The translations under genes were made by a program, and so were the position numbers. A stretch of DNA of 64,000 nucleotides from the NCBI GenBank assembly GCA_001179505.1, contig CDMY01000336.1, positions 62,001-126,000 of the forward strand, in the 5' to 3' direction. This DNA comes from Vitrella brassicaformis CCMP3155. Lineage: Eukaryota > Protista > Chromerida. The notes beneath the pieces are model-generated. The model did no database searches. It saw only the letters and a list, made by a program, of their open reading frames with translations, and was not told where the DNA came from. Below are positions 28,469 to 58,815 of this stretch, one piece after another. Position 1 is the first letter of the stretch, and every line of letters begins with the position of its first letter.

Positions 28469-31376
28469 ATGGACACGGAAGGGGCGGAGCTGATGGCTGG
28501 ACGCCGAAAGGAGGCTGAGATGGACTGCCACGTGACGGTTGCTCACCAGAGTGACGGGACGTGCACCGAGTACGCCCACATCAAACTCGTCGACATCAGG
28601 GACAAGTTCCTCGTCATCAAACTCTCACCGGCCGATGGACTCGGGAGCCTCAATGTCACGGTGAGTGAGCGACGAATCACCTGCACACACGTGGACGGGC
28701 GGATGGGTCGTGTGGCGGTGTTTTTGATATATGTGCGTCAGATTCCCTCTCAGTCTGTCAAGGAGATCATGAAGACCAAGGGGGACGTCCAGGGCATCAC
28801 CTGCATCGAGACTGGCAGCCACCGCCAGGTCAACTTCTACCCCCAGCCAGACCAGCTCAGGGCCTTCTTCGCCAGGTTCCCCCAACTCAAGCCGCCCGAC
28901 GTCAAAGACAGCGCTCTGCTCACACGCAAACGAGGTTACCATCACACCAACACACCACACCCCCCACACCATTCACCACCCCACCACACTCCTCTCTCTG
29001 TGTGTCTGTGTGTGTCCATCCATTCCATCCATCAATCCATCGGTCAGGTGACGAGAACCCCAACGGCGATGGATTCGTGCCGAACCCCCACATGATGTTT
29101 TCCACGTCGTCCAGCAGCCAGATGATGGGCCAGGGCAACCACAACTACAACAGCAGTAGCTACATCCCGCCTGCACGCGGGCAGCCTGACGTCAACCCCG
29201 GACCGCCACCGCTGGGCGGCGCCATGGGCGGCATCCCCCTGCAGCAGGGGCCCGTGCTGTTCAAGCCACGTGACCGAAACAAAGACCAACGCGCAAACGC
29301 CCTGCACTCGTCAGGTAAGCTACCCTCCCCTCTCCCCATCCCTCCCCCCGTCCACATCGCCCACCCAGCACACACTAGGCGTGTTGTCCACTGTCACGGC
29401 AACAGGTGGGAGCGCTGCTGGACGGGGAGGTGGCGGTGGTGGCGGGGGAGGTGGTGGTGGTCGGGGTGGTTACCGTGGCCAGCCAGATGCCGACGAAGAC
29501 ATGATGATGATGCCTGAGAGCTCGCCCCCGACACAGACGCCCACTAACCGCAACAAACGCGTAAGGCTCCACTGACCACTGGATGGCACACACAAGCCGG
29601 TCACTCCCCCGTGTGTGTGTGTGTGTGTGTTTATGTCAGCGAATGGATGTCGACGGCGGGGCGGCTCAGTGGGGGGCGGGCGGTGCTGTGGGACCGAATG
29701 AGAACGACAACAGTGCACAGCATAGCAACGCGGTGCGCACAAGTCGACAGACACACACACAGACACACAAAGGAGCTCATTGTTGTGGGTCAATCACTGG
29801 TCAGGTGCCTGCTGATGACGGCGCTAAGAGGCGTAGACGCGTAGACATCAGCCGTACTGCTGCTGCTGCTGGTGGCCATAGCGGAGGTACGCAAAGCATC
29901 AGCTGCTGTTGGTGGACTGCACATCGTCATGACCGTCCTGTGCTGTGTTATGGTGTCTTCAGGTGGGTCGATTGGTGCGGGTGGTGCTGCGGCAGAGTCA
30001 CAGCAGCAGCATGAGGGGGGCGGCAGCTCACTGTCGGCAGATCTGACGGCCCCCACAATGCAGCACCCCCACCAGCAGCAGCAGCAGCAGCACCCCGTGT
30101 GGTACGTCCTCGCCCACCGCGGCAGCGATTTCCTGCTGCGGGATGTGCTGCGTCTGAGGGAGAGCTGCAAATGGGCCAGAGGCCTTTTCGGAGCGCCTCA
30201 GCTGCGGCAGCGACTCAGCCATGAGCTCGGCACACAGGCGGGGCTGCGGCGGACGGTGAATGGGAATGTGGTGCAGCTGCTGACATTCGACGACCAGCAG
30301 ATGGGCGAGGGTGACCTGCTGGCGGCGCTGTGTGTGACGGAGGCGGGCGGCTGGAGTGAGATGAGCGAGGCGATCGAGCTGGCGGGGCAGTGCGGCAACT
30401 GCCAGCTGCCTGTGAGGCTCACTGCCGCCGATCTGCACCAATACCCAAACAAGACGGTAAGCCAACCGAGGGAGGGAGGGAGGGAGGGAGGGAGAACGGA
30501 TGGCTCTCAATCGGTGTGTGGTGTGTTGATGTGTTGTGTATGCAGGTGTATTTGGCCGACCCCCGTGTGTTGGCTCAGCTCAAGATGGTCTGCCCCCACA
30601 TCGACTTCGGCGACGGCGTGAGCTTTCGGCTGTTCCAGCACGGCAACACAGTGCGGGCCATCCAGGATTAGGACGGCTTCGAGCTCGACACCAACCCGCC
30701 CTTCCCTGCCAACCACCCCTACCAGCAGCACCGACAGCCGCACGACCCGCCCGTCCGCAGCAGGATCACAGGCTGGGAGTCGCAGCCTCAGTCGCTGCTT
30801 CATGTCGACTCCGCATCTGTGTCGTCGTGTGTTAAGAAGATCGTCCTCAACCACTTCAGGGGGACTCACCAGATCAACAGCACTTGCCGTAATATCGACA
30901 GGTGAGGCGGGGCATCACTGTGTCAGGGCACTGCCACGACACACGAGATGTATGTGTGTCTTCATTGGTCAGGCATATCGACAACGGCCGGCTGGACACC
31001 CTCATGACACAGTCCCCCCACACACCAGTGGAGAGATGCACCACCACCACATCGGAGTGGTCAGCTATCGGCTTCACTTACCGTCGTCTCGTGTTGACCA
31101 ACACTGGCCACCCGTTCGTCGCGTGGATCAACGTCAACGAGCACACCAACACCGGTCAGCCCAGCCCGGCACAGCGAGGGGGAGGAATGCGGTGCCACTC
31201 TCATCTCTGTCCTCTCTTGTCATCCATTTGCAGTGGAGGTGTATGTGTGCATCAACACGACCGAGTCGGCTGTGTCTGGTGTGGGTGGCGCCTTTAAGGT
31301 CCACTTCCCGGTGACCACTCGGCTGGCGCGTGCGGTGCTGGAGACCATCATCTCAGCCAGGATCTTCGACCGATAG
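28469..31376 (+). pseudogene. Chimeric gene: unique N-terminal beta-rich domain and Gly/Gln linker fused in frame to cassette copy 1, with a nonsense codon
   Basis: Phase-compatible exons MDTEGAE...RAFFARFPQLK...NKR|RMDVDGG...HSNA|VPADDGAKRRRRVDIS...|cassette. TAG at 30669-30671 lies where copy 2 has CAG. Natural stop at 31374-31376. Confidence 0.7.
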
Positions 31377-31740
31377 ACAGCTGAGGTATGTTTGCACCAA
31401 ACACGACTGAGACGAGCAGAGGATGCGCTCACGACTTACGCAATGGTGTCTGTGTCTGTCTTTCCATGTGTGTGTCAGGCTGGGCGGTGGTGCGGTGTTG
31501 GCGTTGAAGCGATCCGACCGACATACTCTCTCTGGACGGATGTGTGGGCGGCAGATAGATAGAGGGGGGCGGGTGGGGACTTCCTCTCGTGTGGTGTGCT
31601 GTCTGCTGTGGTACTGGCTGATGGATGGTCTGCCTCTTCCTAATGTCCGCGTGTTTGTTCACACCAGTGTGTCTGTTCGGCTGGCTCGCTCGTCCCTTCC
31701 TGTCTGTTTGCTGCCCCCACTCATGTGCATTGGCCGACCA
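29716..31740 (+). repeat. Multicopy intron-containing cassette, copy 1 (coding module plus about 0.4 kb of conserved 3' flank)
   Basis: Colinear exon, intron and 3' flank identity with 38620-40765 (-) and 55600-58815 (+). Confidence 0.92.
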
Positions 31741-31835
31741 GTGCGATGGATGGGTGGGTCGGCATTCGCCACCTGTGTTGTTTTTGCATCGTATGTGTGT
31801 GATGTAGGTCCCGGCATCACGTCACACAGTTCCTG

Positions 31836-31874
31836 CGGCATAGAGTTCCTGACGCCCGAGAAGGCCTTTCTGAA
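31836..31874 (+). repeat. 39-bp direct repeat, copy 2 (orphan PNKP 3' coding fragment GIEFLTPEKAFLNDRPAD)
   Basis: cggcatagagttcctgacgcccgagaaggcctttctgaa. Confidence 0.92.
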
Positions 31875-32947
31875 CGATCGGCCGGCTGATTTACTCTCGC
31901 TCTCGCCTCTTTTCTCTCCCTCTCTTGTGCCGCACAGACAGACAGATACACACAGGTGTGGCGTAGCGGCGATTTTGCCGACAGCCATCCCCCCAGCCAC
32001 AGACACATTCACACACACACGTGCTCACCTGTACATAACATCCATGAGTGTGTGTGTGTGTGTGGCCGTCGTCCCTCTGGCTGCCCTCTGTATCTCTCTT
32101 CCCCACATTTTTGGTGTCGATGGCCGGTTTTCACACCCATCGTCCGTCTACACACCTATGAATGCTTTCTCTCTCCTCCTCTCCCCTCCCCTTGACAGCA
32201 CAGACAGACAGACAGACAGACATTCCATATCTGTCTGTTTGCCGGTAGCTCCGTCCGTCCTTTGCATGGCACCATGTTCATGTTTGCACGTTTCCATGGT
32301 TGTGCAGATGGCTGTCGGGTGAAGTGCCTAGGTCAATTCCTATTCATGTGCATAGAGGGAGGGAGGGAGCTCGGTGATCTGTGTCTGTGTGTAGTGTTTG
32401 TGTGAGTGGACTGACTGCGAGTTACACGTGAGCGCACGCGTTTGTGTGTAATTATGTACACGAGCCGAGCCAAGCCGGTCAGTCAGTCAGTTCACCAACC
32501 GCACCAAGGCCATGACACGACACACACACATCCATCTCGACACACACAATTGTCATGTCATGAGAGCTCCATCCGCCACACACCAGCCACAGCACACCGC
32601 AGCACACCATGACAGACACACTCCTCTCACACGTACGGTACGTCAGCCAGGCAGTCAGCCTGTTATTCCGCTTCAGGCAGATGGCAGTCCACCTTGCTTG
32701 CGTCTGGCGCTACACCTACCCCACCTAACTGACCAGAAATACCCCCCTCTCTCCCTCCCTCCCTCCCTCCCTCCCGGATTCCCTCCCTGCCCTCTACCTA
32801 CTGAGACAGACAGACAGACAGACCCACACGCGCACACACATACAGCAGTCCCTCCCTGCCTGCATCCCTGCCATGCCATGCGTGTGTGAATGTGTGTGTG
32901 TGAGTGTGTACAGGGTAGTAGTAGGTCGGTTGACTGACTGACTGACG

Positions 32948-35940
32948 TCACCATCCGCCATAGCCTTTGTGCTGGAACTCCACCTCGAGCAGGTAGCGCA
33001 GGCAGATCTGCTCCACGCTGTAGACTATGTACTGATCGACCAACAAGCCAACCAACCACACACACAGAGACAGAGAGAGATGCCTGGATGGGATGGCATG
33101 GCGGACACTCACACATTCCTTCTTGCCTCACCTCGTTGTACTGCAGGACGAGGTCAGGCCGGTTGGTCTCCACAGCGTCACACGCCGGAACCTGACACAT
33201 AAGACACATACACACAGATACACCATATGTGTGTATTTATTGCAGGCGGGTGTGTGAGCTGACCTTGACGCCGTTGGGCAGTGAGATGAATCCGCTGGGG
33301 TCGGGGTAGCTACGTCCGAGGCCCTTGGTGCTGAGCTTGCCGGCCGGGAGCCGGTCGGCATTGTAGTCGGCGTTGCAGAGCTCGTGGCAGTCGCCCAACG
33401 CCACCTCAGCCAACATCATCACACCCACGTTCGAACGCCCTCCAGACTGATTGATGAGTGTATGTATAGCGACACACACACACAGAGAGAGAGAGAGAGG
33501 ATTGTGGGTGAGGTGTGGTGCGGTTGTGAGTGTGTGTTGGTGCCTGTGTGTGTGTATCGCCCACCGGGACATAGCAGTACTGGGCGCTCTTGGAGACCAT
33601 GTCGGCGAAGTAGACCCCCTTGCCAAACATGTACCCCGACACAGGAGCTAGCAACCAACCACCCCAACCACCCCCACCACACACACACACACACACACGT
33701 CAGCCGCCGCAGCTCCTCACCTCCCTCCCTCCCTCCCTATCTACCTTCCGGCGGTGCGATGCGGAGTCCTTGGCTGAGGATGCCCACGTAGTTGGTCAGA
33801 CGGGAGCCGTGCCACAGCAGCATACTGCCACACAAACCATTATATCCACCATTGGAGAGTGGGCTGTGCTGCGCCGGGCAGGGCAGACTGATGACTGACT
33901 CACTGACTCCCGCACCGGTTGTGGTTGTTTTGGTGTTTGCCGAATCGCTTCTCCTCGCCCTGGCGCGCTATCTCGAATATGTTCTGCACCTGCACACACA
34001 CACACACACACACGTGTCCATGCAGCTGCCCCGCCATCTGTTTGTTGTCTTGTCGTGTTTGTCACACCATGCATGGTGTGTGAGGGTGTGTGTGGTGTGT
34101 GTCTGCTCTGTCTGCGCACCTTGAGGTCCCACATCATGTGGGTCTTGCCGTGGGTCTTCTTCACATACGACACTATCAACTGCATGCACCACCCACCCAG
34201 CCACCCACCCCACCAAAACCAAAACCATCCCTCTGGCGTGTGTGTTTGTCGACAGACAGACAGATGGTCACTGACTGACCTTGTGCATGGTGTCCGACGG
34301 CTCGAGCGGTCGTATCTCTGTCTTGAGGCTGCGGTAGTGGATGTCGGCGGGGTGCTCGTCGATGTCCGACGCCTCCTTCAACACGTGCTTGGCGATTTCT
34401 GCACACACACACACACGCAGGGGGTCGTGTGTGTGTGTTGTGTGTTGTGTGTGTGTGTGAAGGTAGGTACCCACCGATTTCAGCGAGTGACTCGAGCATC
34501 TCCTGCTTCTTCTTAACCTGCTCCAGACTGTTGATGGTACTGCCACGTATGTCGGCAAATCTGGGGGGGGAGGGACACACATACCCACGCCAGCCCTCCA
34601 GCCCTTCAGTCCTTCAGCCCTCCCTCCCTCCATTTGCGAGTGCGTTGGTTTGTCGGCGTGTGATGTGGCTGACCCGAAGTCGTGCGGTATGATGGTGTAG
34701 AACTGACTCGTCAAGTCTCTCAGTAACGTGTGACTGCACACACACACAAGCACACACACACCCACACACAGGCACAGACACAAACATGGCCCGGCCTCAT
34801 GCCATCGGGTGTGGTCTCGTGTCTGTGTGTGGGTGGGGTGGCAGCCAGTACTTGCTTACGTCTGTGAGGTGGGTCGTTTGATGTTGCTCTCGATCTGTGT
34901 GAGCACCTTGTAGCCCATGTTGATGGTGCTCTTGGACAGCTTGCCCAGCGGCATCTTCTTGGCGTCATACCCTATCTCCACCTGATATATCGGACCAACC
35001 AAGCAACCAACCAACCAACATGCACATACGCAATGGGTGGTGGTGGTGTGAGTGGCCGAGGGGGTCGTGTCGTGTCACCTACCATACCATCTGGTCGTTC
35101 ATCATTTTGAAGTCGCAGATGCGCTCCACCAACTTGAACACACGATGCTCCAACTGAGACTTGACCGGCTGCAGTGCAGCCACACAAGCACCACACACAT
35201 GTACACCACACCCACTGCCGACCATATCTCTCTCTCTCTGTCTCTGTCTCTGTATCTCTCTCTCTGTCTCTGACCTCCTTCTTTTTGGCCGGTGAGGCCC
35301 CGCCACCAGCAGCAGCAGCGGCCGCGGCAGCCGGTGCAGCGGGCGGCTCCTGGTCGTTGCCGTAGTCCATCTCGAGCAGCATGTACTTGCCACTGTACAG
35401 CGAGAAACTCTGCAACGTCTGGCTCACGCTACCCAACCTGACAGACAGTTGACACAGACACACACACACAGAAACCAATGGAGGGCGGGGGCGGTTGTGC
35501 TGTGCTGTGCTGTGCTGTGGTGTGCTATGTGCAGACGGACCAGTGGTTTCTGGTCTTGTCCCGGAACTTGGACTGAAACTCGGCCTTGGCCTCCTCCTGT
35601 GGGCAAGGCAACGCAACGAACCCATCAATGCATCAAGCGACACACAGACAGACAGGCAGGTAGGCAGGATGGCAAGGAGGCCTGTGTCTGTCTGGTGTGG
35701 AGTGAGCGTTGTACCAGTGAGTGGTACTGCTTGAGAGAGTTCTGAAGGGCGGGCACGCAGGCAGACAGACAGGCAGACACAGCCTTTCATTCGTGTGGCG
35801 GGCGTCATCCCTCTCCCTCTCTCCCTCTTTGTGTGTGTGTGTGTGCGACCTGTCCGTCGTACCCCACGCGCCCCCATCTGTTCCAGCAGTAGTAACTCCG
35901 ACTCTTGACGTCGTCATGCTCCAGCAACTGCATCCACACA

Positions 35941-35971
<31 letters not shown>

Positions 35972-38619: not shown

Positions 38620-40765
38620 TGTGTGTGCCTTGCTGTGTTTGCCCATCTCCCCTCTGCTGCTGTCTGTCCTCTCTCCGGCCCACACACACCTCACCGGTCT
38701 GGGCGGCGAATGCACATGAGGGGGGGCAGTGGGAGGGGAGGGGCGGAGTGGACAGACAGACAGACAGACAGACAGACAGGGACGAGCGAGCCAGCCGAAG
38801 AGACACACTGGTGTGAACAAACACGCGGACATTAGGGAGAGGCAGACCATCCATCCATCCATCCATCCAGCCATCAGCGAGTACCACAGCAGACAGCACA
38901 CGCCACGAGAGAAAGTCCCCACCGGCCCCCCTCTATCTGCCGCCCACACATCCGTCCAGAGAAAATGTCTCGGGCGGATCGCTCCAACGCCAACACCGCC
39001 GCCCAGCCTGACACACACATGGAAAGACAGACACAGACACCATTGCGTAAGTCATGAGCGCATCTTCTGCTCGTCTCAGTCGTGTTTGGTGCAGACATAC
39101 CTCAGCTGTCTATTGGTCGAAGATCATGGCTGAGATGATGTCCCTCAGCACCGCACGGGCCAGCTGAGTGGTCACCGGGAAGCGGACCTTGAAGGCGCCA
39201 CCCACAGACACAGCCGGTTCGGTGGTGCAGACATCCACACGCACTGCAAATGGATGACAGGAGAGGACAGAGATGAGAGTGGCACCGCATTTCCTCCCCC
39301 TCGCTGTGCAGGGCTGGGCTGACCGTCGACGAAACGATCGATGCGAATCCATGCGACGAATGAGTGGCTGGCGTCGGTCAGGACGAGAGAACGATTGCGG
39401 CCGATAGGGCCGAGGTACGATGTTGTGGTGGTGCATCCCTCCACTGGTGTGTGGGGGGACTGTGTCAGCAGGGTGTGCAGCCGGCTGTTGTCGACATGCC
39501 TGACACACACAACGTACACTCGTGTGTGACGTGGCAATGCTCACAGAGAGTGATGCCCCGCCTCACCTGTCGATCATACGGTAAGTTCTGTTGATCTGGT
39601 GAGTCCCCCTGAAGTGGTCGAGGACGATCCTCTTGACATACGACGACACAGATGAGAAGTTGCGAGCAAACAGCGGCGGCTGCCAGCCCTGGTGAGAATA
39701 GTCGATCCTGCTGCGGACTGGCGGGTCATGGGGCTGTCGGTGCTGCTGGTAGGGGTGGTTGGGAGGGAGGGGCGGGATGATGTCGATTTCGAAGCCGTCC
39801 TGGTCCTTAATGGCCCGCACTGTGATGCCGTGCTGGAACAGCTGGAAGGTCACGCCGTCGCCGAAGTCGATGTGGCGGCCGACCATCTTGAGCTGAGCCA
39901 ACACACGGGGATCGGCCAAATACGCCTGCACACACAACACATCAACACACCACACACCGATTGAGAGCCATGGTCCCTCCCTCCCTCCCTCCCTCCCTCG
40001 GTCGGTTGGCCTACCGTCTTGTTTGGGTGTTGGTGCAGATCGGCGGCAGTGATGCTCACAGGCAGCTGGCAGTTGCCGCACTGCCCCGCCAGCTCGATCG
40101 CCTCGCTCATCTCACTCCAACCGCCCGCCTCCGTCACACACAGCGCCGCCAACAGGTCACCCACACCCATCTGCTGCTGGTCGAATGTCACCAGCTGCTG
40201 TCCGTTGGCCGTCCGCCGCAGCCCCGCCTGTGTGCCGAGTTCATTGTCTGTTGTCCATTGGCTGAGCAGCTGCCGCAGCTGAGGCGCTCCGAAGAGGCCA
40301 CTGGCCCAGTTGCAGGTCTTACTCAGACGCAGCACATCTCGCAGCAGAAAATCGCTGCCGCGGTGGGCGCAGACGAACCACACGGGGTGCTGCTGCTGCT
40401 GCTGCTGGGGGTGCTGCATGGGGGCCGTCAGACCTGCCGACAGTGAGCTGCCGCCCCCCTCATGCTGCTGCTGTGACTCTGCCGCAGCACCACCCACACC
40501 AATCGAGCCACCTGAAGGCACCACACAGCACAGGACGGTCATGACGATGTGCAGTCCACCAACAGCAGCTGATGCTTTGCGTTCCTCCGCTATGTCCACC
40601 ACCAGCAGCAGCAGCACCACCACCATCAGCAGCAGGGCTTCTGCCTACGCGTCTACGCTTCTCGGCGCTGTCATCATCAGGCACCTGACCAGCAACACAC
40701 ACCAATGAGTTTGTGTCTGTGTGGGCGTGGGTGTGGACTTGTGCGTACCGCTTTGCTATGCTGTT
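38620..40765 (-). repeat. Multicopy cassette, copy 2 including 3' flank
   Basis: Reverse complement is colinear with copies 1 and 3. It shares its 3' flank with copy 3 up to gcaaggcacacacac. Confidence 0.92.
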
Positions 40766-40805
40766 TGTTGCGGCTACTGTCCATCTGACGAACACGGTCA
40801 ACCAC
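39110..40805 (-). CDS. Lineage-specific family protein (cassette copy 2), apparently intact, with a short unique N-terminus
   Basis: Exons ...MDSSRNKQHSKA|VPDDDSAEKRRR...|HPVWFVCAHRGSDFLLRDVLRLSKTC...ELAGQCGNCQLP...|AYLADPRVLAQLKM...|...IISAMIFDQ*. TAG at 39110-39112. Start codon uncertain. Confidence 0.75.
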
Positions 40806-41510
40806 CTGCACCAAGGAAGCAAAGCAGCCACACAGCGACATGGGATGCAGTCATCAGTGCGCCTGTGATCTCAGTCTGCCGACTCACTGCTCAGTGTGTG
40901 AGTTTTGGCGTCAGCCTTCGAGCTGAAACTGACGCCAGCCATCAAGAAGCAGCCCGACTGATGCCGTCAGTGCTGCCCGCCGCACAAATGCAAAACCTCT
41001 CAACTCAGGCCGTCACCGTCAGATCTGACGGCACACACACCGCACAGCCAGGCAGGGAGGGAAGGGAATGTGTTGCCTGTCGTTTCTATGTGTTATGGCT
41101 CATCTGCCTGTCTGCCTGCCTCCCTCAGTTGGCCTCGCTGATGGGAAGCGCCTCGGCTCGCTGAGTGAATGGGTGGAGAGGTCTTTTGGTCTCACCGATG
41201 GTGACGAGAGCAAGTGTGGAGGCATCAACAAGCCGTCATCGGAGCTAAACTTTCCTCGTCCGCTTTGGAATGCGAGTTCCTTCGTCAGCTTTGGGCTTCG
41301 AGGGAGGAGGCGGGATCTTTCCCTGTGCGTATCGAGGGTGAAGGTGACGGCAAACGCGTATCTTGCGCTGCATCTGTGCGTGGGTTGCGCCTTTCCGCTG
41401 CAGATGTGTCGCTGCCTCTGTGCGTCTGAGAGCATCCAGTCTGTTTGTCTGGCGTGCTATGTCGGATGAAGCTTGCCATCGAATGCACACAGCAATGGAG
41501 CCCACGGCGG

Positions 41511-44500
41511 ATGCTGCTGATCTTGATCACTCTGTGCCTTCCCGGGTCCGCGCCTGCCGCCCTACTTCATCCGCTTCCCCTCCCTCTTTCTTCTTTCCGC
41601 CAGAGGACTCAGCTCACTGCACATCCCCACCCCCCCAGCCACATGAGGCATCCCCCACCCCCTCTGCTGCATCCCTCACACAGTGCCCCTCTCCCCCTCC
41701 CTCTGTCCGGCGCCGGCCTGCTCGAGCCATCCGCACAGGCGTCGCTGCACTCCCTCCTGCACCGTCTGAAGCATCTAACCCACCAGTCCCGGTCGTCAGC
41801 GGCCAAGGCCCGTCGCCACGGCGTCACCAGCGGCTTTCACCGAGAGGCCAACAACTCTGTCGAGGAGGCGCGGGACATCTTTGTAAGAGTGGAGGAGGTG
41901 CTCGGTTTCTCCGGCCACCCCGGATCGTTTACCCCTCTCAAGGCCGATGAGTGGGACGTGATTGTGTGCGCAGCCAGCCGGCTGCTGGGCTGGCGGGGGG
42001 CGCTCATGTGGCTAGAGAGGATGCGACGGCACTCCTTGGCGCAGCGGCCGTCTTCAACGGCGTGCAATGCAGTGATGGGTGCGCTAAGCCGGTCGAAGCG
42101 GGCGGGGGAGGCGCTGGAGTTGCTGTCTAGGATGGACAAGGAGGGCGTTGATACGGACTGCTGGACCTACAGTGCGGCGCTGGGTGCGTGCAGCTGGTGC
42201 TGGGAGGGGGTTGAGCTATATGATCGGCTGAGGGCGGAGGGCGTCCAGATGGATGTCTTCTGCTGCAACTCGGCATTGGCTGCGTGTCGGCACCTGGCCC
42301 TGCCAGACAAGGCCGCCGAGATACTTCAGGTGGCCAGGAAGCAGCACACAAACACGAGATGGACACCTCAACAACACGTGTATGTGTATGTGTATGTGTA
42401 TCGTTTTCTTCTTCAGGACATGAAGGCATCCGGCGTTCGTCCAGATGCAGGCTCATACAAGCTGGCCATCCACTCACTGCACTCACTACTGGAGAGGTCA
42501 ACTCCCGACAACACACCCACCGACCATTCCCTGTCAGCGCGAGCCCTCGCCCTCTACAGCGACTTCCAGCGGCAGCTCAATGACGGTCCCTGCCCGCAGG
42601 TGCTGAGTGCGACGATGCGGGTGCTGCTAAAGGAGGGGCAGTGGCGAGAGGTGCTGCTGCTGCTGGATGACAGCTGCCGTGCCGGATGTGGGGAGGGGGA
42701 GGGGGGTGTCGATTTGGCTATTGTGAATATTGGGCTGGGCGCCTGCGCTATGGGCAGGGATATGGGGAAGGCCAACGACATTCTCGAGGTGAGGGAGGCT
42801 GGCCGCCCAGAGAGAGGGGGAGGTGCATGCAATGCATGGGATATGATTGTATGCGCTCGTGTTGTGTGTTGTGCAGGTGATGCGGGCGTGCCAGTTGTCT
42901 CCCTCCATCATGACGTTCAACGCCTACATCAACTGTCTGGCCGAGTGCGGCCTCTGGCAAGACGCCCTCGCCCTCGTAGACCCCTCACGGGCTCTTGGCT
43001 CGCCCCCGGCTCTGCCCCCGCCCCTCCCTCCAATGGCGCCCAACATCGAGACATACAACCAGGTGCTGAAAGCGCTGGAACGGTCGGGAGAGTGGAAGAT
43101 CGCCCTGCAGCTGCTCATGCACCAGCTGAGCCACGTGGCGCCCTCACTCAAGCTGGGAGAGCCGTCGGCAGCCGCGATCCGTGACGAGAGAGGCCGCGTG
43201 ATCGCCCCCGACGCCATCAGCTACACGACGGTGCTCAAGGCGTGTTCGCGAGAGGGGCGGTGGCGGGCGGCTTTGCGAGTGTTTTACTGGATGCGGCAGC
43301 TGCGGAGGGGCAAGGAGGGAGTGGATCGTCTGGCGTACACGACGGCCATCAGTGCGTGTGCACGGGCGGGCGAGGTGGGGTTTGCTGAGAGTCTGTTTGA
43401 GGAGGCCAAGAGGGAGGGGGTGCTGCCCGACCTCATCATGGTCAATGCACTGCTCGACGCATGCGACAAGGTGAGTTGAGTGGGTGGATGCCTCACACGC
43501 ACATGGGCTTTGTATTGTGTGTGTATGCATGTGTGTGTCAGGCTGGTGAGTGGGAGCGTGCAGTTGACATTCTGACCCAGCTGAAGGAGACACCCTTCCC
43601 CTCTCTGCGGCCCGACCACCGCTCCTTCAACTCGGTCATCTCGGCCTGCTCCAAGAACGGCCAGATGGACCTGGCATTCTCATTCACTCTGGAGATGCAG
43701 ACCTACGGCTTCAGACCGAACGAGGTCACCTACCACGCCCTCGTATTCGCCGCTGACGACCGACTCAGGCCCCCTGATGATGCGACGGCTGATGTGTCGG
43801 CAGAGGAGCTGGACAATTTCCTCGGCGACGTGTATGACAGCACCAGCGACGCGCCTGATCCGGTGGCTTATGGGGCGGCCATCGCGTCATGCAGACGGAG
43901 GGGCGACTGGAAGCAGGCGTTCTCCATCTTGCGCGAAATGAAGGGCCACGGCCTGACGCCCACGTCTTTCTGCTACACGGCCACCCTGCAGACCCTCATC
44001 GCCGCTGCAAAGAGCGGCAGATACACTGGGGATGGAGAGGGAGAGGGAGGGGGAGAGGGTGCGGAGAGCGGCCCCTTTGCGCATCACAGCTGGTGGAGCC
44101 ACGCCGTCTCCTTGATGGAGGACATGCGCGAGGACAACGTGCCGCCCGACAAGAACATGTTTGCCACCCTCATCGACCTCCTCGATCGACTTGGCCACGG
44201 CGATCTCGCTCTGGAGCTTTACAGGGAGGCCGTCGACCGGTCCCTGCTGCCCTCGTCAAGCCAAAAGGACGAGGGAGGGATGCTTGACCTCTCGCGCCAG
44301 CCGTCGGCCCTCACACGAATGGCACTGAAGCACGCGCTGCACATCGCACTACACGGGGGCCCCATGCCGTCATCCATCAACACGGGCGACGAAGAGCTGC
44401 TCACCCACGCCCGTCACTTTTTGCGGGCGTGCAACCCGCCCATCCGCACACACGGCACCCGCCATCCCCACCGGCTGATGATCGACCGTGGCGATTTGAT

Positions 44501-44648
44501 CGAGTTCATGCAGGTGCGGTCGAGGGCGCTGAGGCTGCCGAGCCGTCGGAGGGGCGGTCTGGCCAAGAGGCGGGCAAGGCTTGTGGGGACAAGGAGAGAA
44601 GACAGCAGCAGCAGCAGCAGCAGCAGGGGACGGGATGAGGGAGACTGA
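41511..44648 (+). CDS. Pentatricopeptide-repeat protein with N-terminal signal/transit-like leader and C-terminal SMR-like domain
   Basis: Multiple 35-aa PPR motifs (ACNAVMGALSR, TYSAALGAC, TFNAYINCLAECG, TYNQVLKALERSG, SYTTVLKACSREG, AYTTAISACARAG, SFNSVISACSKNG). Leader MLLILITLCLPGSAPAALL followed by an S/R-rich stretch. Confidence 0.9.
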
Positions 44649-49553: not shown

Positions 49554-49948
49554 TATTACTGCGATGCGACAATCGTTGCAACGTTGACAGCAGAATCTAC
49601 CACCCCAGAGTGTTTAGAGCGCATGTGTTTAATGGTCGGTTTGTCGATCTACGGAAGTTGGCCAAAAAACTATCGTTCACCGGGAGCCAGTGAAGTCAGC
49701 ATGCCTACCATGCTTGCTGTCTACACGCCTGTCTCTACCTCCTGCTTCTACTTCATTCTCGTTTTAAACCAGATCGATTGAGGATCGAATTTCTGTTTTT
49801 CTCGAATCTACCAAATTCGTTTGTTGGTTTTATCGCCTGGATTCCTTTCCAGTGTGATCACACACACATTGATGCAGAAAAACATAGTTTGACTTGCGAG
49901 CTTGAGCTCGCAGAAGAGTCCATTTGTCCATGAGCACACTCTTCGATT

Positions 49949-52900
49949 ATGTGGCATCTGCGGCTGTTGTGCCTCATCGCGACGGCTTCAAGCATCAACC
50001 AGAGAGCACCCTGGGCCTTCAGGGGTCACCATCATGTGCTGATCTGCCAACACAGGCACCGCAGACTGAGAGCCCAGCATCCGCGAGTGTGGATGGGCGA
50101 CGTTAGCGGCGAAGGGGTGGGCAGAATGACCACCATGGAGGGACAGACCAGGCAAGGCGGCCCATCCCCCGTCCCGAAAGAATGGAAGACTCTCTCAGAT
50201 GGTGAGCAAGATCCCACAATCAGGCAGATCTTCCATGCAATTGCATTGCTGATGTTGGTGCATCTATATCATGCGCAGGTGTGTATCTGATGCATCCGAC
50301 GCGTGACGACCCCTTCGATGCGGCTCAGGATGATGCCGACGTCACCGGCGACGCGCCCTTGACAGATCAGGACATCGACATCGTTTTTATACACGGGTAA
50401 CGACACACAAGACAACACAGGCAGACAGGAGCATTGGGCGCAGACGAAAGCCATCTGTATTGTGATGTGTTGCATATCCCTTCATTTGTCAGGTTGCAGG
50501 GCAGCGCCGCCAAGACCTGGCGCCAGATCAGGCCGTCGCAGATGAGTGACGATGATGCGGCCTTGACGGACCCATCCGCCCCGCTCTCCCCCACATCCAC
50601 GGGCCGCAACGGTCGACCGCGGCGGCGCCGCCCCCCTCCCCCAGCCATTTATGTCACTTTGGAAGACCTGCAGAGGGAGGCGGAGATGCATGACGACGAC
50701 GGCGATTTGAAACAGGATGTTGGTGAAGCGGCAGATCGAGATGCGATGCCGGCATCTGCCGCCGACACACCAGAGGATGACGTGGAGCTGCAGACAGATG
50801 ACGAGGATGCGGCTGAGAAGGCGAGGAGGGGACGAAGGCTTCGTTTCCCTCGCTTCAACATCCGGCTGTCCCCATCCTTTGCTCGCGCCCTCCTGCGGCT
50901 GCCCTCGGCTCTCACCAAGGACCAAACACGCCAGAAGACAGCGAGAAGGGCCAATCGCAACCCGTCCTCTAGCCCCCTGCTGCTTGATGACGTTCAAGAC
51001 ACCACGGCGTCATCGAGCGGCGATGAGAGCCGCGCTCTGGCCGTGACTGAGGAGATGAGGGCCATGATCTCCTCACTGGAGCAGGGGATGCAAGAATCAG
51101 ATGAGGAGGACGCCGAGACTGATGGACGCCCCTATGTGCCCCTCTCCGGCAACTTTCTCGATGATCCCTTCGTGCCAGAGGACAACAGCACCCTGGAGCT
51201 CGGCAGCAGGGCCCAGCCAACGGAGAGCGAAGCATCGTCATCCCCTCCCAAGCCCCGTCCACCTCCCGGCCCTCCGTTGAAGCGTTTCTGGTCTGCCGTG
51301 ACGGACGCCTTGCGTCAGCGACAGCGCGCTGGAATGAGTCCGTCTCGTCGAAAGGCACTGGTGCGGGAGGCGTTGAAGAAGGGCATAGAGGAGGAGGAGA
51401 TGCGGGCACAGCAGAGGGACGTGACCGTCAGGAAGGACCCAAAGTCACAGTAAGTCAGGGGAGGGGCTAGAGAGAAGTCGGGGCTGGTGGATGACGGTGA
51501 GAGAGGAGCGAGGCGTTGCGTTCGTCGTTTTTGGATGTGTATGTTGCAGGACGTTTGTACACTGGCCCGCCCGCTTTATCCCTGAGGACTTCCCCGGAGC
51601 AAGGATCATCGCTGTCGATTACGACGTATGTGACGCACACGTGACCTGATTCCTATCTGTCATTGTGCCATTCCTTCCGCGCGGTCAGGCTCCGATGTTC
51701 CGTGACCGGAGGCCCCGCAGGCAGCTCCCCAACCCGCGGCAGAGCCAACCAGCCAACGTGACGGCTGCAGAGAACAGCAGTGCCCAAGACACGTCGACGC
51801 CCTCCCCGCCGACCGCGGCCCCTCTCACGACACTCACGGCATCCCCTCCCTGGGCCGTTCACCAGGGGAGCCAGCGGTCCGCGAGGGCAAAGGGCCTGGC
51901 CCACATACGCCCCCCTTCTCCCCCGCTCTCGTTCAGACCCCCTCCGCCCCAGAAAACGCCTGTGCTCGACCTCAGGGGACCGGCGATGCGCTTCGGGGGC
52001 TGGCGAAACCCACTCAGGGATCGCACCAATGCCACCCAAGACGCCCAGCCGGTGAAGGAGAGGCGGGGCCACCGGCGGCAGTCAGCCGAGGCGGATCGAC
52101 TTACTTTGAATCAGCTGTCGGACGATCTTCTGGCCCGGCTGCAGGCGGCTGGTGTGGGCAGGAATGGGAGGGGTGTGGTGCTGGTTGGTCACTCATTGGG
52201 AGGGCTGCTTGCAAAGAGCCTTGTGGTCAAGGACAAGGTCAGCACGGTCACAAACGAAGAAATACCATTCGTCTGAATCATCCGCTCGCTTCCTTTGTTG
52301 TGGCGCATCAGGGTCTTCGTGAGAGCGTGCGTGGCGTTCTCTTCTACGGCGTGCCGCACTTGGGTGCGCCAATCGCGAGCATGCCCCGAGTGTTCCGGCC
52401 CATGTTCTCGCAGATAGTGCAGCAGCTGCGGCCCAACCGTGAGCTGCTCTTCCTCAACAACGCATTCAGAGACATCGCACTACAACAAGGTGTGCATGTG
52501 GGTGGGAAGGTGGTCTCACGACTGATACGCCACGCCCCTCTGCATACGATACGTATGCGTGTGTGTGTGTGACCGTAGGGATCGAGACGATATCGGTGGC
52601 TGAGTCGCGGCCCACCCGTCTGCCTTTCAACCAGCTGGATTTTGTGGTCCCGGTAAACTATGCCTATCCGCGGGTGGGCGAGCTGTGTGTGGTGGGCGAG
52701 GCCGACCACATCGAGGTCTGCAAGGCCGCCGCCAAAGACGGAGACGCCAGATACGAGACGCTCAGAGACCTAATCACACGGGTAAGAGATCTCCGTGTGG
52801 GTGCCCACACGCCAGGCAACTCATGTTTGCGGATGGCTGTCTGTAACTTCAGGCGTTGGAGCCGCAGGAGTCATCCAGAGATCGGCTGCTCCTCCCACTG

Positions 52901-53158
52901 GTGTTCACCTCACGAGCAGACCGGAGTACAAACAATAGGCCAACCGCCGCGCAACCACTGGAGGCGACGGACACCACATCATCGAGTGTGTCAGGAGAGA
53001 GCAGCGAAGATAGCGAGAGGGAAGCGGGTCGGCTGGAGGCGTTGCGCAGGCGTCTGTTCCGGATGCGGCGTGGCGATGGCGATGGCGATGAGGGAGAGGA
53101 TGAAGACAGCGGTGCGCGGGACGACCGGCCTGCATCGAGGCCGCTGGTTCTGCGGTGA
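49949..53158 (+). CDS. SERAC1/PGAP1-like alpha/beta-hydrolase with hydrophobic leader and long insertions
   Basis: DIVFIHGLQGSAAKTWR; HWPARFIPEDFPGARIIAVDYD; VLVGHSLGGLLAK (GxSxG); LFYGVPHLGA; ADHIEVCK. Confidence 0.85.
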
Positions 53159-54167
53159 CTGGTGGATGAGGCATGAGTGCAGAGGTCTGTCTAGAGAGGG
53201 TGCCGTCTGTTCGGTTGTGTCAATATGCATAGCCTGCCTAGGTAGGTAGCTCAAGTAGAACTATGAGTGAGGCGCGAGGGTCAGCCTGCCAGCCAGCCAT
53301 CTATCCATGCAGCTGTGTCAGCTAGTGCATGTGTGTGTACGGTAGGGTATGGTGTGGTGTGGCGTGGCGTGGCGCTGCATATGTAATCTAATCTGGCGGC
53401 ACGTGTATGCGCTTGAATGAATGTGTATATCCCGAAGGGATGAGATGAGGAGCGCGTCAGTCTTTTGCAACGGCTGACATGTCAGTGAGAGGTGGATAAA
53501 GAAAGGGCGAGGGCCGTGTGTGTTTGGTGTGATGGATTGATGCGATGCATGTCATGATACACACTGTGTGTGGTGTTGTGCTACTCTCTGCAGAGAGAGA
53601 GATCGGGTGAGCTGTACAGATGGACAGACAGACAGATGACGACTGCCTGGCGTGGCGTGGGGTTCGGCTGACTGACATGATTCACTGATTGATTGACTGA
53701 TGCGTTTGGACCCCTCATGGTACTCCATTGACTGAGTGAAAGCAATGGCCTGTTTGCAATCACAAGAGGCAACGAACTGATAGCATGAGAGCTTCGTACA
53801 CCCCGGGGTGGGCGGAATCGCCACACGGAGCGCCGCACGGAGGGGAAGCCTTCTCCTTATCGAACAGCCCCTTCAAAAGCACTCCTCACTCATCGCGTTG
53901 GGGCCTCGCAACAAGCACGAGCTTTGATTCGATCGCCGCTTGTGAGAAGAGGGAAAGAGCGAGGAAAGCGCTCACCGAGACCGGCTTGGAGCCATGGAGG
54001 CAGATCCAGCCCGCCCTGTCCGGTGAACCATCCCCTTGCCTCTTCTTCGGCCTCTGGCAGCTATTTTCTTCTGCTGGACGTCAGGGGCTCTCTACAAGCG
54101 GCATCCATCAGGTTGCTGCTTGGATCCAACCAGCATCAATCTCATCGCCTGAGCAGGAGCCAGAAGG

Positions 54168-57100
54168 ATGAGCCTCTCGTATCGTATCGGGCCTTCCCTC
54201 CCTCCCTCCCACCAGCGGAGTGGTGACGGTTCCCAGCTGGCTACGTCGTCCCCCATCTCTGCAGGCGGCAGTATGTCCATCGACTCATCGCAGGCCAGCC
54301 TGGCCATGGCCGCTGCTGCTGCCACCATGCCCGGCTACCCCATGCCCACACACCCACACTCACCGCCACACTCCCGGCTCCCCGTGGCCACCCCGGGCGG
54401 GCAGACGCCTCTGACGCACGACAACAGCATGACGGCTCAGAAGCGGCAGGGTGTGGGTGTCAACACGCCGCCGGGTCGTGTGCTGCTGATTCGCAACTTG
54501 CCGCGGGACGTCAGCGAGTTGGAGATCAAGGAGGCCTTCTCGCCATTCACCATGGGGCGGGCACTCAGGATGTCCCTCAACCTGAGTGCTGGACAGGCGC
54601 TCGTAGAGTTCCCGGTATGTGGGAGGAGGGTGGAGGGAGGAGGGTGGAGGGAGGAGGGTGGAGGGAGGAAGGAACAGTCTCCATGAACCCACCCACCATA
54701 CACAAGATGTCTGTCATGTGCCATGTGATCAGGACGGGCCGGCTGCGTCGGCTGCGCTGGCTCAGGTGCGTCAGGGCGGTGTGGTGATCCGCGGGTGCAC
54801 CATCCAGGGCGGCTACCGGACGCCCAAGCCTGTGGAGACCAACCAGGAGCGCAGCGCCGATTGCCGCATCCTGCTCGTCACCGTCACCAACTTGCAGTAC
54901 GCCGTCGAGATCGACGCATTAGAGCGCATCTTCTCCAGATACGGATTCGTCGACAAGGTCAGTGGACACACACACCATCACAACAAAGCAGCTTGCCTTC
55001 ATTCGTGTCTGTGGTTTCTTATGTGTTGCAGATAGTGTTGTTTCAGAAGGTGCAGGGGACGATGCGTGCGTGGATTCAGTTCCAGAGCAGCATTGACGCC
55101 GCCCAGGCCCTCGCACAAGTCAACGGACGCAACATGTACGACGGATGCAACACCCTGCAGGTAGGTACACACACACGACAGGGAGGCAACGACCACACAA
55201 GATCCACTGGGTAGGTGCAATCAAGGTTGGTGCCTTTTCTGCTGTCTCTCCCACTGGCTGCAGGTTCAGCTCTCTGACATGACGGAGCTCTGGGTGAAGG
55301 ACAAGCGCAACAAGGGCCGCGACTCCACCGCACACGCCGTGCCCATTGCTGGTGACCCGCCACGCACACACACCCAGTGCTGATGTCGATGTCACATGTG
55401 ATCTGGTGTGTGGATCAGGTGTGGCTGGCTATCCCACAGCTCCTGGCGGCGTGCACCTGATGCCCCCAGGCGACTCCACCTATGCGCCACCACCACCAAT
55501 GGTACGTAACGACACAACACACGAGACGAAAAGGCAATGTGGGCTCATCTCTCTCTGTCCTTTTTGTTGGGTCACCAGGGCATGCCCCCGCAGGACATGA
55601 GTGCCAAGAAGCGTAGAAGCGTAGACATCAGCCATGCTGGTGGTGATGGTGGTGGTGGTGGACACAGTGGAGGTACGCAAAGCATCAGCTGCTGTTGGTG
55701 GACTGCACATCGTCATGACTGTCCTGTGCTGTGTGGTGCCTTCAGGTGGCTCGATTGGTGTGGGTGGTGCTGCGGCAGAGTCACAGCAGCAGCATGAGGG
55801 GGGCGGCAGCTCACTGTCGGCAGGTCTGACGGCCTCCATGCAGCACCCCCAGCAGCAGCAGCACCCCGTGTGGTTCGTCTGCGCGCACCGCGGCAGCGAT
55901 TTTCTGCTGCGGGATGTGCTGCGTCTGAGGAAGACGTGCACCTGGGCGAGAGGCCTCTTCGGAGCGCCTCAGCTGCGGCAGCTGCTCAGCCAATGGACAA
56001 CAGCCAATGAACTCAGCACACAGGCGGGGCTGCGACGGACGGCCAACGGACAGCAGCTGGTGACATTCGACCAGCAGCAGATGGGTGGTGACCTGTTGGC
56101 GGCGCTGTGTGTGACGGAGGAGGGCGGCTGGAGTGAGATGAGCGAGGCGATCGAGCTGGCGGGGCAGTGCGGCAACTGCCAGCTGCCTGTGAGCATCACT
56201 GCCGCCGATCTGCACCAACACCCAAACAAGACGGTAGGCCAACCGACCGAGGGAGGGAGGGAGGGACCATGGCTCTCAATCGGTGTGTGGTGTGTTGATG
56301 TGTTGTGTGTGCAGGCGTATTTGGCCGATCCCCGTGTGTTGGCTCAGGTCAAGATGGTCGGCCGCCACATCGACTTCGGCGACGGCGTGACCTTCCAGCT
56401 CTTCCACCACGGCAACACAGTGCGGGCCATCAAGGATGAGGGCGACTTCGAGATCGACATCGACACTTCCCTCCCTCCCAACCACCCCTACCAGCAGCAC
56501 CGACAGCCGCACGACCCGCCAGTCCGCAGCAGAATCACATATTCCCACCAGGGCTGGCAGCCGCCGCTGTTTCATGTCGACTCCGCATCTGTGTCGTCGT
56601 GTGTCAAGAAGATCGTCCTCAACCACTTCAGGGGGACTCACCAGATCAACAGCACTTGCCGTAATATCGACAGGTGAGGCGGGGCATCACTGTGTCAGGG
56701 CACTGCCACGACACACGAGATGTATGTGTGTCTTCATTGGTCAGGCATATCGACAACGGCCGGCTGGACACCCTCATGACACAGTCCCCCCACACACCAG
56801 TGGAGAGATGCACCACCACCACATCGGAGTGGTCAGCTATCGNNNNNNNNNNNNNNNNNNNNNNNNNNNNNNNNNNNNNNNNNNNNNNNNNNNNNNNNNN
56901 NNNNNNNNNNNNNNNNNNNNNNNNNNNNNNNNNNNNNNNNNNNNNNNNNNNNNNNNNNNNNNNNNNNNNNNNNNNNNNNNNNNNNNNNNNNNNNNNNNNN
57001 NNNNNNNNNNNNNNNNNNNNNNNNNNNNNNNNNNNNNNNNNNNNNNNNNNNNNNNNNNNNNNNNNNNNNNNNNNNNNNNNNNNNNNNNNNNNNNNNNNNN

Positions 57101-58333
57101 NNNNNNNNNNNNNNNNNNNNNNNNNNNNNNNNNNNNNNNNNNCCTCTTCGGAGCGCCTCAGCTGCGGCAGCTGCTCAGCCAATGGACAACAGCCAATGAA
57201 CTCAGCACACAGGCGGGGCTGCGACGGACGGCCAACGGACAGCAGCTGGTGACATTCGACCAGCAGCAGATGGGTGGTGACCTGTTGGCGGCGCTGTGTG
57301 TGACGGAGGAGGGCGGCTGGAGTGAGATGAGCGAGGCGATCGAGCTGGCGGGGCAGTGCGGCAACTGCCAGCTGCCTGTGAGCATCACTGCCGCCGATCT
57401 GCACCAACACCCAAACAAGACGGTAGGCCAACCGACCGAGGGAGGGAGGGAGGGACCATGGCTCTCAATCGGTGTGTGGTGTGTTGATGTGTTGTGTGTG
57501 CAGGCGTATTTGGCCGATCCCCGTGTGTTGGCTCAGGTCAAGATGGTCGGCCGCCACATCGACTTCGGCGACGGCGTGACCTTCCAGCTCTTCCACCACG
57601 GCAACACAGTGCGGGCCATCAAGGATGAGGGCGACTTCGAGATCGACATCGACACTTCCCTCCCTCCCAACCACCCCTACCAGCAGCACCGACAGCCGCA
57701 CGACCCGCCAGTCCGCAGCAGAATCACATATTCCCACCAGGGCTGGCAGCCGCCGCTGTTTCATGTCGACTCCGCATCTGTGTCGTCGTGTGTCAAGAAG
57801 ATCGTCCTCAACCACTTCAGGGGGACTCACCAGATCAACAGCACTTGCCGTAATATCGACAGGTGAGGCGGGGCATCACTGTGTCAGGGCACTGCCACGA
57901 CACACGAGATGTATGTGTGTCTTCATTGGTCAGGCATATCGACAACGGCCGGCTGGACACCCTCATGACACAGTCCCCCCACACACCAGTGGAGAGATGC
58001 ACCACCACCACATCGGAGTGGTCAGCTATCGGCTTCACTTACCGTCGTCTCGTGTTGACCAACACTGGCCACCCGTTCGTCGCGTGGATCAACGTCAACG
58101 AGCACACCAACACCGGTCAGCCCAGCCCGGCACAGCAAGGGAGGAGGGAATGCGGTGCCACTCTCATCTCTGTGCTCTCCCGTCATCTGTTTGCAGTGGG
58201 TGTGGAGGTCTGCACCACCGAGTCGGCTGTGTGTGGTGTGGGTGTCCCCTTCAAGGATCGCTTCCCGCAGACCACTCGGCTGGCGAGTGCGGTGCTGGGG
58301 CCCGTCATCTCACAGAGGATCATCGACCAATAG
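54168..58333 (+). CDS. PTB/hnRNP-L-like gene (RRM1-RRM2) fused in frame to cassette copy 3
   Basis: RRM1 RVLLIRNLPRDVSELEI..GQALVEF. RRM2 RILLVTVTNLQYAVEIDALERIFSRYGFVDKIVLFQK..RAWIQF..NGRNMYDGCNTLQVQLS. A phase-0 junction PPPPM|GMPPQDMSAKKRRSVDIS leads into the cassette. The span includes the gap and the probable artefactual duplication. Confidence 0.75.
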
Positions 58334-58815
58334 ACAGCTGAGGTATGTCTGCATCAAACACGACTGAGACGAGCAGCAGATGCGCTCACGACTTACGCAA
58401 TGGTGTCTGTGTCTTTCCATGTGTGTGTCAGGGTGGGCGACGGTGTTGGCCTTGGAGCGATCCGCCCGACATACTCTCTCTGGACGGATGTGTGGGCGGT
58501 AGATAGATAGAGGGGGGCGGGTGGGGACTTCCTCTCGTGGCGTGTGCTGTCTGCTGTGGTACTAGCTGATGGATGGATGGATGGATGGTCTGCCTCTCCC
58601 TAATGTCCGCGTGTTTGTTCACACCAGTGTGTCTCTTCGGCTGGCTCGCTCGTCCCTTTCTGTCTGTCTGTCTGTCTGTCTACTCCGCCCCTCCCCTCCC
58701 ATTGCCCCCACTCATGTGCATTGGCCGACCAGACCGGTGAGGTGTGGGTGGGTCGGAGAGAGTGGACAGACAGCAGCAGAGGGGAGATGGGCAAATACAG
58801 CAAGGCACACACACG
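55600..58815 (+). repeat. Multicopy cassette, copy 3 (889 bp appear twice, either side of a gap)
   Basis: 55954-56842 matches 57143-58031 (offset 1189). 3' flank shared with copies 1 and 2. Confidence 0.9.
56843..57142. other. Assembly gap (300 N)
   Basis: Run of n counted directly. Confidence 0.99.

Follow-up and report, generated by a model that had tools for sequence, protein, structure and literature searches.

The question raised by this locus is whether a repeated, intron-containing unit of roughly 2 kb is a mobile module that appends itself in frame to resident genes, or whether the chimeric genes that it forms can be attributed to the ordinary growth of a gene family. The locus lies in a window (the whole stretch of DNA analyzed, 64,000 nucleotides, nt) of the genome of Vitrella brassicaformis CCMP3155, corresponding to positions 62001-126000 of contig CDMY01000336.1 (C336); the genome searched comprises 72.7 Mb in 1,064 contigs. 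An original prediction, made from the letters of this window alone, had proposed a dedicated mobile module joined to three unrelated N-termini. Our best explanation, to which we assign a probability of about 0.7 as a whole, is that the “cassette” represents an entire gene, belonging to a very large and rapidly evolving family restricted to V. brassicaformis, and that the two in-frame chimeras formed with it are by-products of duplication and recombination, not the work of a mobile grafting module.

The repeated unit and its gene family

When the window is compared with itself, three copies of about 2 kb are found at 29717-31713 (+), 38761-40764 (-) and 55603-58756 (+), hereafter copies 1, 2 and 3. 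They are 85-90% identical to each other (BLAST E = 0), and the similarity covers both exons and introns and extends about 340-390 nt beyond the stop codon. The predicted description of three copies that keep their introns and a 3′ flank is therefore sound.

The unit is, however, not a three-copy element. Its family was surveyed by a DNA query of the genome contigs, a profile built from 20 family proteins and a search of 1.84 billion representative proteins; exons and open reading frames (ORFs) were queried individually, and the overlap-free exon chain of copy 3 was joined in a script for alignment. The DNA query produced at least 45 matches from 201 first-look candidates in the Vitrella genome, the profile 169 exon matches from 744 first-look candidates, and the first core exon of the family was located at about 85 sites spread over dozens of contigs. 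Among the representative proteins, the family comprises 122 clusters. The sources of 20 of these, the weakest included, were looked up, and 18 proved to be Vitrella and two metagenome contigs; no Chromera (for which a check had been suggested along with the prediction) or other relative was found among these 20 sources. Members are also present in MMETSP transcriptomes, and a literature search found no description of the family.

Annotated family proteins have 180-435 aa, and their conserved core, of about 360 aa, begins at a Gln-rich “MQH...QQQHP” stretch. The proposed architecture of the gene consists of an optional head (an MDSS... exon, a block-B exon and a KRR exon resembling a nuclear localization signal, NLS), followed by what would be a degenerate F-box-like stretch and a putative beta-rich C-terminal domain of about 200 aa. 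No Pfam family exceeds its cut-off in the family proteins, and neither copies 1-3 nor P0002, the annotated product of copy 2, has any F-box match. The closest approach is that of P0124, with E 0.0037 to F-box-like (17.4 bits against a cut-off of 24.3) and E 0.02 to F-box, followed by P0098 (E 0.025) and P0017 (E 0.066); all three match at the homologous site and all lie below the curated cut-off, so F-box membership is not established. Distant members carry a plain LFDLPPxV...L..LRRTC motif, and UniProt names both P0098 and P0124 “F-box domain-containing”. A profile of the F-box-like region compared with PDB sequences retrieved no F-box protein and only a chance lectin match (E 0.33). In an AlphaFold2 (AF2) model of a family protein, the mean predicted local distance difference test score (pLDDT) is 56.8, only the beta-rich C-terminal half reaches 70-88, and helices are placed at residues 29-62 with a pLDDT below 50. 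No convincing match to a known fold was obtained with this model for the C-terminal half (best PDB Z 4.9, best ESM Atlas TM no higher than 0.28). Consequently, we class the family as “F-box-like, unproven”, with a C-terminal domain whose modelled fold appears to match nothing known; a role similar to that of SCF adaptors may be suggested. In this GC-rich genome, exons and introns could not be told apart by open-frame scoring of 18 copies. One divergent branch (P0035, P0043, P0048, P0053 and P0055) starts with MG(A/N)xxS, a sequence of the N-myristoylation signal type.

Most copies are stand-alone genes

Evidence on the nature of the unit comes from copy 2 and from a census of what precedes the family sequence elsewhere. 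Copy 2 is annotated as P0002 (428 aa), with its coding sequence at about 39113-40784 (-). Its first exon and some 470 nt upstream, to about 41251, recur with 72-91% identity in at least 14 further copies located on other contigs, so that the exon considered short and private in the prediction is the canonical start of the long form. The head of this long form has three parts, namely the MDSS(H)DAP... exon, the block-B exon (RMDVDGG...NKQHSNEV) and the KRR exon (VPADDGGAKKRRRVDI), the last of which looks NLS-like. At the end of the KRR exon of copy 2 (40626-40634, -), GA is found where other copies have a GT donor, and the P0002 model uses a GT located 15 nt upstream, in frame.

The KRR exon was located at 24 loci, and 4.5 kb upstream of 20 of them were fetched and searched for the family head. 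Twenty of the 24 loci have their own family head, and copy 2 is one of these, which again identifies its first exon as canonical; three are chimeric (copy 1, copy 3 and L031, described below). The remaining one, L055 (C336:211882-212186), is a solo family fragment of about 300 nt that spans the KRR exon, the intron belonging to it and the beginning of the following exon, with no core after it. A majority of stand-alone copies had been named in the original prediction as the result that would speak against it, and, as 20 of 24 loci stand alone with their own first exons and conserved upstream DNA, this is essentially what was found.

The annotated proteins agree with this distribution. Among 162 family proteins, the core is preceded by fewer than 60 residues in 118, by the canonical head in 17 and by other extensions of at least 60 residues in 27; the latter are mostly diverged N-terminal parts of the core that the profile left unaligned. 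A foreign head is thus lacking in 135 of the 162, and is clear in about five, which carry an RRM (P0039), Cyclin_C (P0032), CBM20 (P0025) or other sequence (P0052 and P0149). In P0032 (CEM10031.1), a Cyclin_C fragment precedes the core and a long acidic tail follows it, and in P0025 (CEM03390.1) a CBM20 fragment precedes the core; both are encoded on other contigs. These proportions do not support the idea of a dedicated module appended to resident genes.

The fusion in copy 3

Copy 3 is interrupted by a gap of 300 N (56843-57142), bordered by a repeat of 889 nt (55954-56842 and 57143-58031) that is identical at 889 of 889 positions. Such identity on either side of a gap indicates overlapping contig ends that were not merged, not a real duplication. 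Consequently, 1,189 nt of the copy 3 span (the 300 N plus the repeat) are an assembly artefact, which is included in the span of 29716-58815 originally assigned to the three copies, and copy 3 is a single continuous gene. The tract that is 100% identical to copy 1 (Table 1) reaches this break and is its probable cause. A second gap of 300 N lies elsewhere in the window, at 5948-6247.

Once the overlap is removed, the chain of copy 3 comprises ten exons in which all introns are GT-AG, phases are consistent, and 743 codons are open without stops. Its head is a PTB-type fragment. The homology to PTB paralogs (L033 on C387, annotated as P0139, and L032 at 282 kb of C336) stops at 55604, and that to the family begins at 55603. 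The two genes are therefore joined exon-in-exon and in frame at 55603/55604, and the junction exon reads GMPPQDMS followed by AKKRRSVDISHAGG. This confirms the predicted in-phase continuation of PTB-like RRM1-2 into the unit, with a breakpoint inside an exon near 55600 (the exon being 55579-55672).

The whole fusion is found again at L031 (C336:142500-150500), which is 80-82% identical to copy 3 and is annotated as one protein of 575 aa (CEM03177.1, P0039) with matches to RRM_1 (E 9.8e-15) and RRM_8 (E 7.5e-11). L031 is frameshifted inside the family core. Its join contains a CGGCG microhomology that is present in both parents in matching codon phase, and the two fusions differ at the join by an in-frame indel of 9 nt. 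The exons of copy 3 are 79-95% identical to P0039 at the protein level, and at the DNA level it shows 77-84% identity to the C387 PTB gene. The head of copy 3 can thus be assigned, through the protein of its sister fusion, to PTB-type RRM1 plus RRM2 (RRM_1 plus RRM_8). No RRM3-4 was found after the linker: beyond 55604, PTB homology gives way to the family gene. More complete PTB genes are present at other loci, as a check proposed with the prediction has shown: P0178 (C289, 533 aa), with RRM_5, RRM_occluded and PF22976, and P0139 (C387, 472 aa).

A third PTB RRM1-2 fragment, L032 (at about 1680-4910 of C336:280500-289500), runs about 75 nt past the breakpoint of copy 3 and then enters a long ankyrin-repeat ORF. 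It is annotated as one protein of 861 aa (P0144; RRM_1, RRM_8 and Ank), and is thus another chimera on the same PTB piece. As the PTB fragment has itself been duplicated, and is joined to ankyrin repeats elsewhere, it is as promiscuous as the family gene, and either partner could be the one that was “grafted”. Additionally, a segment further downstream of a family copy on C243 (C243:546237-546373) matches positions 53635-53785 of the window (87%), just upstream of the PTB head; this match hints at a wider patchwork of segments common to these loci.

The fusion in copy 1

In copy 1, the family gene follows a different head, which starts with an ATG at 28469 and includes a beta-rich N-terminus, followed by Gln/Pro-rich and RGG-rich exons. 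This head has no Pfam match and no usable Atlas match, and its fold is not assigned, as the AF2 single-sequence model has a pLDDT of 44. It had been described as a unique beta-rich domain followed in phase by the unit. The phase is correct, as the frame of the upstream gene is kept over five GT-AG exons (the junction exon and the next four), but the head is not unique: paralogs exist on C22 (83-85% identity), C447 and C275, with which homology is lost at 29482, within the RGG exon. Homology to the family is picked up at about 29531, in the final 30 nt of the family head exon (…TQTPTNRNKR), and consequently the claim that every copy begins with the KRR exon is not valid for copy 1, in which the family sequence starts before this exon. 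Between the two parents lies a filler that is found in neither of them (Table 1).

In the core of copy 1, an in-frame TAG is found at 30669-30671 where relatives have CAG, and copy 1 is thus cut short as assembled. With respect to the head, the mid-domain region of its N-terminal exon is interrupted in the paralogs L034 (C22) and L035 (C447) by stops, frameshifts or an additional intron, while the version in copy 1 is open; the family of this head may be largely decayed.

The copy 1 block is bracketed by a 43-nt direct repeat, whose upstream arm (27651-27692) belongs to the preceding gene and whose downstream arm (31832-31874) lies just past copy 1. Such a bracketing repeat was not seen at copies 2 or 3. 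As the downstream arm is part of a flank of 530 nt that also follows a family copy on C243, the repeat does not look like a simple target duplication.

Table 1. Coordinates of the features discussed in the text (positions in the window).
Feature	Position	Strand	Remarks
End of PNK 3′-phosphatase domain coding sequence, upstream gene	27651-27692	+	43-nt copy, 93% identical, at 31832-31874
Copy 1 head	28469-29482	+	three exons; small repeated gene family with paralogs on C22, C447 and C275
Filler at copy 1 junction	29483-29530	+	48 nt (16 codons), in frame, within exon, in neither parent
Copy 1 family gene	29531-31762	+	last ~30 nt of family head exon, block-B exon, KRR exon, core exons, 3′ flank
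Flank downstream of copy 1	31820-32349	+	530 nt, also after the family copy on C243 (L008), 84-93% identity
Copy 2, canonical stand-alone family gene	38669-41251	-	annotated P0002, including ~470 nt of family-conserved upstream DNA
Copy 3 head, PTB-type RRM1-RRM2 fragment	54168-55604	+	homology to PTB paralogs; last 26 nt in junction exon
Copy 3 head exons	54168-54614, 54733-54957, 55032-55160, 55264-55351, 55419-55501	+	GT-AG introns
Copy 3 junction exon	55579-55672	+	5′ part PTB (GMPPQDMS), 3′ part family KRR exon (AKKRRSVDIS...)
Copy 3 family part before gap	55603-56842	+	exons 55746-56233, 56315-56673, 56745-56842
Copy 3 family part after gap	58032-58762	+	rest of exon to 58115, last exon 58197-58330, stop 58331-58333, 3′ flank
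Tract shared by copies 3 and 2	55635-56420	+	94-100% identity, against 79-89% in the rest of the gene
Tract shared by copies 3 and 1	57804-58097	+	100% identical to 30843-31136; also before the gap at 56615-56842
Assembly artefact	56843-58031	none	300 N plus 889-nt exact repeat of 55954-56842; repeat spacing 1189 in self-comparison

Probable exchange between copies and the edges of the unit

Unlike processed retrocopies, all copies keep the same introns with recognizable sequence, and they consequently arose at the DNA level. In this respect the original prediction, which had preferred DNA-level copying to retroposition of mRNA, is upheld, as it is in the existence of two true in-frame chimeras produced by joins inside exons. 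Identity between copies is mosaic, varying from 100% to under 70%. For instance, copies 2 and 3 are 94-100% identical over the 5′ half and 79-89% beyond it, copies 1 and 3 are 100% identical over about 300 nt and 74-91% elsewhere, and identity between copy 3 and L031 varies from about 50% to 100%. Such patterns are best read as gene conversion.

Dispersed copies have in common, to within about 80 nt, a 5′ edge of the unit that lies some 500 nt before the ATG. By contrast, the 3′ ends form nested groups and not one fixed terminus, and the breakpoints of the chimeras differ inside the unit: 29530 in copy 1 and 55603 in copy 3, the latter being equivalent to 29823 in copy 1. Two different internal breakpoints fit random breakage, not the ends of an element.

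A model for the origin of the copies

From these observations, we propose that the family would have spread by DNA-level segmental or tandem duplication, with random breakage, of a unit that takes along its introns and flanking DNA of about 500 nt on the upstream and about 350 nt on the downstream side, and that its copies would frequently exchange sequence by ectopic gene conversion. Copy 2 is an ordinary family member. Copy 3 would derive from a duplicated 5′ fragment of a PTB gene (RRM1-2) that became linked to the KRR exon, with the break inside exons, through non-homologous or microhomology joining, and this fusion would later have been duplicated whole, giving L031. In copy 1, the 5′ half of a small repeated gene would have been joined, through the 48-nt filler, to the end of the family head exon. 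Both joins preserve the reading frame, and only copy 3 is fully open at present. The homologies, breakpoints, frames, copy numbers and mosaic identity are directly demonstrated, the repair mechanism should be considered putative, and the chimeras would be mostly neutral by-products.

Alternative explanations

It could be argued that the family gene is a mobile DNA unit or is carried by one (Helitron-like, a Pack-type capture or another unit without terminal inverted repeats, TIRs) that lands in or next to genes and generates chimeric transcripts. The dispersal of the copies over many contigs, the 5′ edge that many of them share and the 43-nt direct repeat around the copy 1 block would agree with this, but the unit has nested 3′ ends, the chimeras break at different points within it, the downstream arm of the 43-nt repeat belongs to a flank common to C243, and the sole long inverted repeats are the oppositely oriented gene copies themselves. 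As the prediction had itself remarked, no transposase or terminal repeat is visible: neither TIRs, nor a consistent target-site duplication, nor fixed termini with TIRs or Helitron-type ends were found across the copies compared, and Pfam scans of the family proteins and of the large ORFs at about 26.9-53.2 kb detected no transposase, Rep-helicase (or other helicase) or reverse transcriptase, and only PPR and PNK3P genes. (The PPR ORFs are at 41445-44648 (+), between copies 2 and 3, with PPR_2 at E 2e-13 and 4e-28.) Membership in any transposon class is not supported by these features, and we consider a mobile unit very unlikely. Another possibility, that the chimeras are false joins induced by repeats in a draft assembly, draws on the artefact proven at the copy 3 locus, with its unmerged overlap of 889 nt, and on the tract identical to copy 1 at the contig end. 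Nevertheless, it is barely credible, as the join of PTB to the family is found twice (copy 3 and L031) with 80-82% identity, independent substitutions and the 9-nt indel, both joins are in N-free sequence far from the gap, and the join of copy 1 contains 48 nt absent from both parents.

More weight, although still that of a minority view, may be given to the proposal that the fusions are selected, working genes, either new SCF-type ubiquitin-ligase adaptors or nuclear proteins, in which the PTB head or that of copy 1 recruits the F-box-like and C-terminal domains to new targets. Copy 3 is open over 743 codons and ten exons with intact GT-AG sites, which is the main argument that it may be expressed and useful; the PTB fusion has been kept in two paralogs, one of them annotated as a single gene; other foreign heads exist, such as Cyclin_C in P0032 and CBM20 in P0025; and family members are found in the MMETSP transcriptomes. 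Of eight sequencing runs listed, seven include part of the window, with 18-61% of its words; none of them is recorded as RNA, and such shares would fit RNA as well as low-coverage DNA. However, the sister fusion is frameshifted in its core, copy 1 contains a stop codon, and neither Pfam nor the PDB sequences yield a significant F-box match. Constraint also appears to be weak, as judged by the ratio of nonsynonymous to synonymous substitution rates (dN/dS): family pairs range from 0.59 to 1.07, and the PTB head of copy 3 gives 0.74 with L031 and 1.5 with L032, whereas its comparison with the intact PTB paralog on C387 gives 0.45, although these Nei-Gojobori values are rough in a genome of 59% GC with gene conversion. 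A bolder scheme would combine several of these elements: the family gene would be a self-contained duplicating unit, bounded by a defined 5′ edge and driven by its own promoter, that spreads by replicative template switching and whose body (NLS, F-box-like stretch and C-terminal domain) is recurrently joined behind the 5′ halves of host genes by microhomology or filler, serving as Vitrella’s generator of new ubiquitin-ligase adaptors with borrowed heads (RRM, cyclin, CBM20 and others). We regard it as improbable.

Several observations weigh against by-products of duplication and recombination, the explanation that we prefer. The shared 5′ edge would also fit a defined mobile unit, and the roughness of the dN/dS values applies to our own reading of them. 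Two independent, exon-internal, in-frame fusions with all splice sites intact lie within 30 kb, which exceeds what would be anticipated under a purely neutral model, although the joins were noticed because they are in frame; both would be in frame by chance in about 1 of 9 cases. Additionally, copy 3 is open despite being old enough to have a sister at 80-82% nucleotide identity (dS 0.15-0.22), which could point to selection. Finally, neither the word-index searches (137-436, 316-1006 and 260-826 aa) nor the representatives yielded an annotated protein for copy 1 or 3, although this does not prove their absence from the annotation.

Comparison with known systems

With respect to the family, the closest known situation would be that of lineage-specific F-box superfamilies and, with respect to the chimeras, that of DNA-level fusions such as Sdic. 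Lineage-specific F-box superfamilies evolve by birth and death, and several hundred F-box genes are present, for instance, in Arabidopsis and Caenorhabditis. The Vitrella family resembles them in being very large, species-restricted and clustered on some contigs, in its rapid duplication with many truncated or stop-bearing copies and a dN/dS near 1, and in having an N-terminal F-box-like stretch followed by a presumed target-binding domain. By contrast, its F-box is weakly detectable (the best Pfam match remains below the curated cut-off), its C-terminal domain matches no known fold, and a subset of its members has an extra head that includes the NLS-like KRR exon.

The Drosophila gene Sdic originated by fusion of the duplicated AnnX and Cdic genes, and was later amplified in tandem. 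The Vitrella fusions similarly retain introns, have breakpoints inside genes with short microhomology (CGGCG) or filler and, in the case of the PTB fusion, were later duplicated; unlike Sdic, they include two independent fusions of one family at a short distance from each other, one of which has already been disabled by a stop codon. In plants, Pack-MULEs and Helitrons capture gene fragments. The likeness to such captures lies in the DNA-level copying of gene pieces with their introns and in the possibility of chimeric reading frames, but no TIRs, consistent target-site duplications, Helitron-type ends or transposase were found for the Vitrella unit, which is a whole gene with its own upstream region and nested ends. 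As for the PTB/hnRNP I family (RRM_1, RRM_8, RRM_5 and RRM_occluded), its RRM1-RRM2 region in P0139 and P0178 has a homologue in the copy 3 head, but this head is truncated after RRM2 and the linker, and the family gene takes the place of the later RRMs.

Significance

All three copies can now be assigned to one previously undescribed family, confined to Vitrella and comprising roughly a hundred genes or more. For the annotation of this region, a false tandem duplication is removed from copy 3, one stop-bearing chimera (copy 1) is identified, and copy 3 emerges as one intact RRM-family fusion gene of 743 codons for which no annotation was found. The junctions, with their 5-nt microhomology and 48-nt filler, and the conversion tracts provide clean examples of the birth of intron-containing chimeric genes, in this case in a free-living relative of the apicomplexan parasites. 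As the evidence stands, they reflect ordinary gene-family dynamics and not a new mobile mechanism, and their importance would rise if the fusions were expressed and the family bound Skp1.

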